Shown here piece by piece: positions 13,291 to 15,853 of a stretch of 64,000 nucleotides of DNA. The translations under genes and the position numbers were made by a program. Source of the DNA: Piromyces finnis finn. Lineage: Eukaryota > Fungi > Neocallimastigomycota. Each line of letters begins with the position of its first letter. Position 1 is the stretch's first letter. Under the pieces are notes generated by a model that saw only the letters and a program-made list of their open reading frames with translations, made no database searches and was not told the DNA's origin. Location: contig MCFH01000019.1 of NCBI GenBank assembly GCA_002104945.1, positions 1-64,000 on the forward strand, written 5' to 3'.

Positions 13291-15853
13291 ATGAAGTGTC
13301 TTCCAAGATTTAAAAAGGAAAAGAAAGGTAACGTATATTACTGTTTAAATGTTCCACTTTACAATAACTATACTTTACAGACCATATCTATTTTTATTTT
13401 AAAAGAAAAAGTAAAAAAAAAAATATAGCATTGTTTTAAAATTAAAAAATATATAAATATTTATTTTATATACGATTTCATTTATACCCGAAATAGGTGA
13501 GAAAAAGAGATTAAAGGAAAAATCAAAGAAAACTTTAAAAAACAAAAGTGATAATGATTCAAAAGATACTAAAGAAAATATAAAACCTTCAGAACAAATA
13601 GAAATTGTACCATTAGATAATAATAATAATAATAATGAATCAAAAATAAAGGATATCAATGAAAATACAAAACAAAATGAAACAGTAATAGAATCAAAAA
13701 ATGAGGAAAAAAGTTCTGTGACCGGTGAAGATCTTGCCAATGCAAGAATTGAAAGAAAGAAAGAATTGTATAAAACCTTATGGGAAAAAGAATATGAATA
13801 TTCTGATGTATTAGTAAGAATGTTACAATCTTTTAGAAAACCATTAATTGATGATGCTAATTCAGAAAATCCAAGCATTACATTAGATCAAATCAACACT
13901 TTATTTGATGGTTTTGATAGTATTTTAAATTTAAGTTGGTCCTTGTGTGGTGAATTAAAATATATTTCTAATATGTATAAACAACTTAAACCAGTCAATA
14001 TTGGTAGGTCTAAATTATTATAGGATACGGAATAATTTATTTTGAAATGCCAAGAATAAAAATAGATATTAATTTATATTAATTTTATATATATGTATAT
14101 ACCTATTCATTTAAATTTATATCCTTTTTTTTTTTCCCATAAATTATATACAAATGATATTTATCCTTTTTTATCTACAATTTTTTTTTTTTTTTGTTAA
14201 AAAGGGGATGTATTTTTAAAACATGCCAAGGAATTTGAAACTTACTTCAAATATTCTTCACGTTTTTCAACTGCAAATGAACTTCTTCGTGAATTAAATG
14301 ACAATACTAAATTTAGAAGATATCAATATGCCCTATTAGAATCAACTACCTTATTAAAGGATGATGATTATCGTGAAGTTTTAAGACTTCCAATTTATCA
14401 TATTTCACAATACAATACCATATTAAAAGAATTATTAGATAATACAGCAAAATATGATCCATCCTATGAAATGTTGGAAGATAGTTATGAATATATTAAT
14501 GAACTCTTTTTAGTGTTGAAAGAAGCACTTAAAAAAGAGTCCAAGATTGATGAAATTCTCGAAATTAGAAAGAATATTGTTGATTGTCCTCGTTCCATTG
14601 TCAAACCAGAGCGATACTTATATCGTGATTTTAATGATTTATTAGAATTACCAACCCATAAACCTATTAGAATTATTGTATTTTCCGATGTTTTATTAAT
14701 AGCCAAATGGGATAGAAAAATCAAAAAATATGTATTTAATCGTGTAGTCAATTATAAAGCTTTAAAAGTGATTGATAATGTTTCCAAGGCCGATACCTCA
14801 ATATTTTCACTTCTTTTATTGAATCCATTTAGTAAAAAGAATTTTGATATTCCAGCCCCACCAAACAATCGTAGATTTAGATCGGTTGATAAACCAGTAC
14901 CCTACAGAGGTCTTCAAAACGATCATAATGATGGTGTTGGTGTTTCACGTGTCTTTTCACGTCTTTTCAGTTGGTCCTTTAATCAAAATATCACTCGTAT
15001 TGATATCAAGGCTCCCGACAATGAAACTCAAGAACAAGTTGTCAATTTGATTAATAAAAGAATATCTGAACTTCATCCACCACCATTTGAACTTTTATGG
15101 CCAGATCCAAAGGATATATTTGATACAGATATTGTCAAAGGTATTCGTAATCCAGTGCCAGCAGATCCAAAAGAAATTCTTTTAAATTCCTACATTTGTA
15201 ATGGTATTTATCATTCCTTCCCAAAACGTTTAAGAATTAAGCGTAGTTTAACACTTCTTTATTCCCTTCAAAATCATGGTTCTAGTCTAAGTACCTTTTA
15301 TGAACGTAGTAATGCTGGTTATGGTACAGCACAATTATTAGTTATTAAGGATGATAATGATACTATCTTTGGATGTTTCACCGCAGAACCATTTAAGATT
15401 AATAATGGTTTCTACGGTACTGGGGAATCCTTCCTTTTCAAGTATCAACAACCAAAGCAAGTGTTGGGTCATCATAAAAGTTTTGGTATTAATGTTCGTT
15501 CCAGTCTTCGTAATAATCTTCGTCATAAAGAATCCACTGCTGGTACCGCCACAGAAGCCCCACATGGTACGCTTAAAATTTATCCATGGGCAAAGACCAA
15601 CTATCTTTTCATTAATAGTACGCATGAATATGTTGCCGTAGGTAGTGGTAAAGGTAAATATGGTATTTGGTGTGATAATAACTTCCAACGTGGTTCATCC
15701 TTCCCTACCGAAACCTATCATAATGAGACCTTGTCTGGAGCCGAACATTTCAATATTGTTAACGTTGAACTTTGGGCCTTCACCTCACAAATTGAACGTG
15801 AATTTAGAAGAAAAAGACAAACTCGTTTCCCAACAAAATTCCAAAAACTTTAA
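13291..15853 (+). CDS. RhoGEF (DH)-PH-TLDc multidomain protein, 3 exons, about 730 aa
   Basis: Exons 13291-13327, 13497-14003, 14205-15853 (2193 nt, in frame, all GT-AG). DH-like segments: RKKELYKTLWEKEYEYSDVLVRMLQSFRKPL, IGDVFLKHAKEFETYFKY, LPIYHISQYNTILKELLDNT. PH-like segment: PERYLYRD...IIVFSDVLLIAK. TLDc segment: LLYSLQNHGSSLSTFY, FGCF, YGTGESFLF, GSGKGKYGIWCD, TETYHNETL, VELWAF. Confidence 0.85.

Follow-up and report, generated by a model that had tools for sequence, protein, structure and literature searches.

A DH-PH-TLDc protein family of anaerobic gut fungi whose DH domains have lost hallmark residues of Rho exchange factors

Recent work has identified TLDc proteins as general regulators of both the assembly and the location of the V-ATPase, and they differ in the module that sets where and when the TLDc domain acts (LysM/GRAM, TBC or myristoyl/EF-hand). 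DH-PH, the module of the Dbl-family Rho guanine nucleotide exchange factors (RhoGEFs), is absent from the described TLDc partner modules. The sequence analysed here, positions 1-64,000 of the forward strand of contig MCFH01000019.1 of Piromyces finnis finn (GCA_002104945.1; this whole stretch of 64,000 nucleotides is referred to as the window), carries at 13291-15853 a gene whose product joins the two, which raises the question of what a DH-PH module does in front of a TLDc domain. The fusion is real and conserved across genera, and the gene has two paralogues in a family restricted to the anaerobic gut fungi (Neocallimastigomycota). It encodes a cytosolic multidomain protein of 730 residues with a polybasic low-complexity N-terminus, an ECT2-like DH-PH, a conserved linker, a TLDc domain of the Oxr1/NCOA7 type interrupted by an inserted loop and, at the end, a short basic tail. 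On balance, we favour the reading that the DH-PH is a targeting or scaffold module and not a conventional exchange factor, joined to a TLDc domain that would dock on the V1 part of the V-ATPase.

The fusion gene and its transcripts

The most trivial explanation for such an architecture is an annotation artefact by which a RhoGEF gene and a neighbouring Oxr1-like gene were merged. Beyond the general risk of such errors, all that speaks for it is the doubtful first junction of the deposited gene model. Nonetheless, the third exon (14205-15853) encodes by itself the C-terminal half of the DH domain, the PH fold and the complete TLDc domain in one open frame, as the initial annotation had stated, and Pfam searches of this exon retrieved both RhoGEF (profile positions 76-175 of 180, E 3e-11, 44.3 bits) and TLD (PF07534; 123 bits over a cut-off of 24.5, profile positions 5-169 of 170, E 1.4e-35). 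Therefore, the fusion is independent of exon joining. A merger of neighbouring genes was rejected on the single open frame that runs without a stop from DH to TLDc. Moreover, the architecture is common to three paralogues, and at least seven samples contain intronless transcript contigs of an identical full-length orthologue; an artefact is thus hardly credible.

This orthologue, the Neocallimastix protein P0009 (738 residues, 74% identical), is interrupted by two introns in the genome. Alignment by blastn, in three blocks, placed them at the same positions as in P. finnis, including one within the DH domain and one behind a first coding exon that is very short (its precise end lies in an 11-nucleotide overlap of the blocks). 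For the identical protein, at least seven JGI samples also contain intron-free coding contigs, about 2.5 kb in length apart from one of 3.6 kb, and several of these end in A-rich runs; many other orthologues lie on contigs barely longer than their open reading frame. The Neocallimastix orthologue is transcribed as one mRNA from DH to TLDc, which is strong if indirect evidence for a single transcript in P. finnis.

The P. finnis gene consists of three exons separated by GT-AG introns on the plus strand (37+507+1649 = 2193 nucleotides, that is 730 residues and a stop). The three-exon, in-frame model of the initial annotation stands, with the end of exon 1 at 13327 as its sole correction:

13291-13327, plus strand: exon 1, with the ATG at 13291, 12 codons and one base (MKCLPRFKKEKK, G split); polybasic N-terminus; donor G/GTAACG at 13328
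13328-13496, plus strand: intron 1, GT..AG (ending in ..ATAG), 169 nucleotides, about 18% GC
13497-14003, plus strand: exon 2, donor G/GTAGGT at 14004
13497-13717, plus strand: first part of exon 2, a K/E/N/S-rich low-complexity linker skipped in the deposited model P0001
13718-14003, plus strand: second part of exon 2, the N-terminal half of DH with conserved regions 1 and 2 (CR1, CR2); Pfam RhoGEF profile positions 5-58, E 0.005 on this piece alone
14004-14204, plus strand: intron 2, GTAGGT..AAAG, 201 nucleotides, interrupting the DH domain within a Gly codon
14205-15853, plus strand: exon 3, one uninterrupted frame with the TAA at 15851-15853; Met-started part 14471-15853

The frame of exon 3 is open from 14201, and its base composition (27-40% GC) can be compared with the 10-20% GC found between genes of the very AT-rich window. 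The deposited P. finnis protein P0001 ("TLD-domain-containing protein", 688 residues) is 100% identical over exon 3 and shares the intron 2 junction (..PVNIGDVFLKH..), where the orthologue also has an intron; it reads past the exon 1 donor at 13328 into the intron and skips the K/E/N-rich start of exon 2. We prefer the exon 1-exon 2 junction of the 730-residue model, which orthologue transcripts support over the deposited one. The N-terminus encoded by exon 1 agrees with that of the transcript-supported P0009 (MKCIKIFKKEKKG), the linker at 13497-13717 can be aligned to the N-terminal region of P0004, a transcript-derived orthologue, and has a comparable stretch in the orthologues, and the orthologue carries an intron at the position matching intron 1, inside the overlap mentioned above. 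Intron 1 also contains an AT-rich, low-complexity sequence at 13434-13473. The searches reported here were made exon by exon, the public protein P0001 being used where a continuous DH domain was needed.

A divergent DH-PH module

Of the Pfam families named in the initial annotation, RhoGEF and TLD were significant. In P0001 the RhoGEF match (PF00621) reached 74.7 bits over a cut-off of 27.6 and covered profile positions 5-175 of 180 (E 1.3e-20), and the same positions were covered in P0001 and five relatives (E 1e-19 to 1e-20). No Pfam PH model matched at E up to 10, and the PH call rests on the fold. Thus, of the DH-PH module initially proposed, the DH part stands on Pfam and the PH part on structure prediction, the expected Pfam PH match being the part that failed. 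An AlphaFold2 model built on an alignment of 14 sequences (predicted local distance difference test, pLDDT, 78) shows a helical bundle followed by seven strands and a C-terminal helix. The two parts in exon 3 are delimited as follows:

14205-14575, plus strand: C-terminal half of DH (conserved region 3, CR3, and the last long helix), from Pfam RhoGEF, the ECT2, Asef and P-Rex2 alignments, and the AlphaFold2 helices up to model residue 219
14618-15070, plus strand: PH-like fold, with seven strands (model residues 234-364) and a C-terminal helix (368-384) in AlphaFold2 model m4e59c0635bf4

In the PH-like fold, strand 6 is separated from the helix ahead of strand 7 by an inserted, disordered loop of about 50 residues (304-355, pLDDT <50). 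In a Foldseek search of the DH-PH model against the PDB, the best 50 matches were without exception DH/PH tandems, with alignments of about 400 columns, including ECT2 (among the top 3), P-Rex1 (E 4e-14), Asef and LARG (template modelling score relative to the query, TMq, 0.64). Hence, this module, like the TLDc domain described below, is predicted to fold as expected.

A profile of the DH-PH alignment run against PDB sequences retrieved ECT2 (6L30), a Dbl-family RhoA exchange factor, at E 3.8e-23, 12 orders above the next match (1.6e-11). The alignment to ECT2 runs from CR1 through the ..CP..L.. DH-PH junction to the PH strands, and profile hidden Markov model (HMM) alignments to ECT2, Asef and collybistin likewise extend into the PH region. 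ECT2 has an N-terminal tandem BRCT, which the P. finnis protein lacks; the latter adds instead the long disordered PH loop and the C-terminal TLDc domain. As to BRCT, Pfam searches of P0001, P0005, P0009, P0013, P0016 and P0017 returned RhoGEF and TLD only.

The initial annotation assumed that this module acts on Rho GTPases. If so, the protein would be a catalytically active RhoGEF of the Dbl family in which the TLDc domain provides a direct link from the activation of Rho GTPases to the assembly of the V-ATPase or to the handling of oxidative stress. The complete DH-PH fold, the RhoGEF match well above threshold and the identity of the best PDB sequence match, ECT2, itself an active RhoA exchange factor, are what would be expected under this alternative. 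ECT2 is rendered exchange-dead by E428A/N608A (PMC8385449) and by replacement of PVQR565-568 with AAAA (PMC10072221, PMC9539458), and these are the sites where the P. finnis protein departs from it. After fixing the offset between the 6L30 chain and ECT2 numbering on PVQR 565-568, the HMM alignment to 6L30 places a Thr at the E428 position (codon 13775-13777), PIYH at PVQR (14390-14401) and a Lys at the N608 position (14519-14521). The Pro of PVQR and the Asn position are 43 residues apart in both proteins, and the same columns were obtained from HMM alignments to Asef and P-Rex2 and from a MAFFT alignment with 11 DH-only relatives. The DH-only relatives in the MAFFT alignment retain these residues: the CR1 motif ..E[LI]..TE..Y, or a variant differing at one residue, occurs in all ten of the nearest proteins aligned at CR1, P[IV]QR is kept in 10 of the 11, and the Asn in nine, the other two having Asp. 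The three paralogue clades of the family, the gene described here belonging to clade A, read as follows at the three sites:

CR1 Glu (ECT2 E428): clade A T, S or R; clade B E; clade C V
PVQR: clade A PIYH; clade B PIYQ or PIFQ; clade C PIER
Asn (ECT2 N608): clade A K; clade B K; clade C R

Two of the three exchange-dead sites are therefore substituted in every clade, the Gln of PVQR and the Asn having been lost throughout. The P. finnis domain still has the second Glu of CR1, the E of TE, as well as the LP..Y core of CR3, which speaks for the active-GEF alternative. The fused DH domains score 54-75 bits against Pfam RhoGEF, about half of what most RhoGEF domains reach in this genome and elsewhere; the three of P. 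finnis are among the lowest of the genomic RhoGEF matches spanning most of the profile (54-73 bits versus about 100-157 for most others). RhoGEF gave 28 matches in the P. finnis genome, at roughly 20 loci. Identity among clade A orthologues is 77% for DH and 80% for the PH core; the module is therefore constrained and not decaying. Such constraint is also what an active exchange factor would show; yet a DH-PH that lacks the Glu, the Gln/Arg and the Asn while remaining about 77% conserved is most likely a non-catalytic or atypical targeting or scaffold module. Judging from these residues, Rho exchange activity of the P. finnis DH-PH is doubtful, the attribution made by the initial annotation does not hold up well, and the active-GEF alternative appears rather unlikely; as to its oxidative version, nothing ties the protein to oxidative stress.

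The TLDc domain and its C-terminal tail

The remaining coding part of exon 3 comprises two further features:

15173-15781, plus strand: TLDc domain of the Oxr1/NCOA7 type, from PF07534, PDB matches, AlphaFold2 and an own-genome match at 15173-15781
15782-15853, plus strand: conserved basic tail and TAA; TSQIEREFRRKRQTRFPTKFQKL, 23 residues following the last TLDc strand (ELWAF), at 15782-15850 of the window

In PDB sequence searches the domain matched Oxr2, NCOA7 and yeast Oxr1 at E 1e-22 to 1e-24 with 27-30% identity. Its AlphaFold2 model (pLDDT 80.6; predicted template modelling score, pTM, 0.77) found only TLDc domains in Foldseek (16 of 16 significant PDB matches), with template modelling scores relative to the target (TMt) of 0.83-0.93 to NCOA7, zebrafish Oxr2 and yeast Oxr1p in the V1 complex. 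V-ATPase binding by mouse Ncoa7 depends on, or is aided by, G815, S817, G845, G896, L926 and E938 (PMC8608904). When mapped by way of the alignment to zebrafish Oxr2, these correspond to G358, S360, G389, G479, L509 and E521 of the exon 3 translation; all six are kept, in the contexts HGSS, IFGC, VGSGKGKYG, ETLS and VELW, and they are invariant in the family alignment (A1). The intact TLDc core initially reported, including the Glu of VELW, is thus confirmed and extended to the other five conserved residues.

Two peculiarities accompany this core. A variable disordered insertion of about 40 residues lies at about 15449-15568; across the family it ranges from 40 to 150 residues, and it is much longer in paralogue B. 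The tail TSQIEREFRRKRQTRFPTKFQKL, part of which forms a short helix in the AlphaFold2 model, occurs in all three clades, with a mean identity of 85% within clade A and 43% between A and B. It is missing from the two canonical Oxr1-like copies that the genome also holds, which end in ..EIWGFEY and ..EIWGLEF. The C-terminus of Oxr1p is partly buried in the V1 interface (PMC11094088), and an additional C-terminal helix of mEAK-7 grips the rotor subunit D (PMC9263379). The tail could thus disturb or extend the mode of binding to V1, and it may be an additional V-ATPase contact or a targeting signal.

TLDc proteins bind V1: Oxr1p contacts EG2, A, B and the C foot (PMC8804929), mEAK-7 binds V1 as well (PMC9263379), and all five mammalian members bind the V-ATPase (PMC8608904). 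In the same study, the purified TLDc domains of Tbc1d24 and Tldc1 alone did not pull down the V-ATPase (PMC8608904); therefore, not every TLDc domain binds autonomously. This opens the alternative of a V-ATPase-independent TLDc role, in which the domain would bind some other partner and the protein would be a scaffold of the Rho pathway unrelated to proton pumping. There is a precedent for a partner of this kind, the TLDc domain of TBC1D24 reportedly binding the C2 domain of KIBRA (PMC11465063). The loop insertion and the tail, the latter at a site that is buried in the Oxr1p-V1 interface (PMC11094088), and the presence of at least 14 TLD loci in the genome, which suggests functional diversification, would fit the same alternative. 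Set against this, both the sequence and the fold of the P. finnis domain come nearest to those of Oxr1, Oxr2 and NCOA7, which bind the V-ATPase autonomously, and the six residues of Ncoa7 are invariant, making a V-ATPase-independent role quite improbable. The P. finnis genome also encodes a V-ATPase E subunit, and coupling to the V-ATPase is plausible by homology.

Distribution, paralogues and a proposed role

Sequence word searches collected 20 family proteins, all of them Neocallimastigomycota-looking, 17 with both Pfam domains and the other three being 5'-truncated models with TLD alone; the named sources are Piromyces finnis, Piromyces sp. E2, Neocallimastix and Anaeromyces. When a full-length profile was run against 1.84 billion representative proteins, both modules occurred together in only three full-length clusters, which correspond to paralogues A, B (P0016/P0024) and C (P0026). 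The rest of the best 150 matches (at least 111 bits) contained either TLDc or DH-PH, never both; two average domains would score about 240 bits, so the reach of this search ends at pairs of very weak domains scoring below 111 bits. An ESM Atlas search yielded weak RhoGEF-PH clusters (score 0.84) and no RhoGEF+TLD cluster. The lineage-specific fusion that the initial annotation had surmised is thereby upheld, as is its remark that no DH-PH-TLDc protein has been characterised: our literature search found no relevant paper combining TLDc with RhoGEF. The architecture is undescribed rather than unseen, for P0001 publicly carries PF00621 and PF07534.

The three DH-PH-TLDc paralogues of the P. finnis genome (G000) lie on C101 (the gene described here), C154 (L019, G000:C154:210965-214234) and C178 (C178:1069136-1071521, within L023-L025, G000:C178:1067636-1073021). 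The TLDc insertion of paralogue B is about 150 residues long and rich in N and S, and paralogue C shows 73-84% identity to P0026, which is derived from a transcript. They belong to a larger set of at least 14 TLDc loci, as compared with two in yeast, which includes the two canonical Oxr1-like copies; three of these loci carry DH-PH, and most of the others have no Pfam partner domain in the adjoining open frame. TLDc loci were located at C158:609526-610014, C68:22273-22758 and C90:657565-658131, and on contigs C152, C164, C112, C35, C189, C113, C154, C178, C151, C186 and C146. TLDc proteins seem to have expanded in this lineage. In the window, the upstream neighbour of the fusion gene is a multi-exon kinesin motor gene on the minus strand (5040-8889; Pfam Kinesin E 3e-42 and 2e-9 in two exons) with a 3' exon of 627 residues without a Pfam match, and the downstream neighbour on the plus strand (19556-23338) is an open frame of 1260 residues with no Pfam match at E <=0.001.

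Comparison with characterised TLDc proteins helps to frame a role for the fusion. Like Oxr1, NCOA7 and Oxr2, the P. finnis protein has a complete TLDc domain with the six residues tested in Ncoa7 (PMC8608904); in those proteins, however, the N-terminal partner is LysM/GRAM or nothing instead of DH-PH. Oxr1p ends at the last TLDc strand, whereas the P. finnis protein adds the basic tail of 23 residues and the disordered TLDc insertion of 40 residues. With mEAK-7 and Rtc5p it shares the position of TLDc between an N-terminal targeting region and a C-terminal extension; their match is much weaker (E 3e-5; TMt 0.24-0.39), and the P. finnis protein has neither a myristoylation motif nor an EF-hand-like domain, and a far shorter tail. 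TBC1D24/Skywalker shares the overall design, a small-GTPase-regulator fold at the N-terminal side and TLDc at the C-terminal side, and the Skywalker TLDc is a structural match at E 5e-14. Its regulator is a TBC domain, of the Rab system, as opposed to the DH-PH of the Rho system, and in PDB sequence searches the P. finnis TLDc is closer to Oxr1/NCOA7 (E 1e-24) than to Skywalker (E 6e-10). In TBC1D24 the TBC domain is devoid of the canonical catalytic fingers and serves to bind membranes and lipids; TBC1D24/Skywalker joins a degenerate small-GTPase-regulator domain to TLDc. By analogy, the P. finnis protein would seem to resemble it in its logic.

The reading that we favour, a DH-PH targeting or scaffold module joined to a V1-docking TLDc domain, can be laid out in three steps. 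The TLDc end would dock on V1 (stalk EG, subunits A and B, C foot) in the manner of Oxr1p, NCOA7, mEAK-7 and Rtc5p; once docked, it would tune the assembly or the location of the V-ATPase; and the DH-PH would target or scaffold, without catalysis or in an atypical manner, by binding a Rho-family GTPase or a membrane surface. Several points weigh against it. Divergent DH domains devoid of the hallmark residues can stay active, so residue loss is no proof of lost exchange, and clade B retains the CR1 Glu. Docking on the V-ATPase is predicted from homology, not every isolated TLDc domain pulls the complex down, and the 23-residue tail, the loop insertion of 40-150 residues or both could change or block Oxr1p-type binding to V1. 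Finally, the transcripts come from the Neocallimastix orthologue and not from P. finnis. As for the other elements of the initial annotation, it is speculation that the PH domain binds phosphoinositides, and so is a connection with oxygen stress, the latter having the historical name of the TLDc family as its sole footing.

It is tempting to go one step further and to envisage a pseudo-GEF adaptor that evolved and was then triplicated in anaerobic gut fungi, with a catalytically silent DH-PH sensing a Rho-family GTPase or the identity of a membrane and thereby delivering an Oxr1-type V-ATPase assembly or disassembly factor to specific compartments. We put this forward tentatively, as a possibility that is less likely than its appeal might suggest.

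The interest of the finding is bounded by the fact that it concerns one lineage-restricted family, that both domains are well known and that the proteins are already public with both Pfam domains. Given the loss of exchange-factor hallmark residues, the family offers a natural setting in which to test what the DH fold can do apart from catalysis. Furthermore, a DH-PH-TLDc protein would connect regulation of the proton pump with the Rho/polarity system, in a phylum whose rhizoidal growth is polarised, whose zoospores are motile and which is genetically hard to study. If true, the pseudo-GEF adaptor would represent a direct, previously unknown wire from Rho-type polarity signals to organelle acidification.

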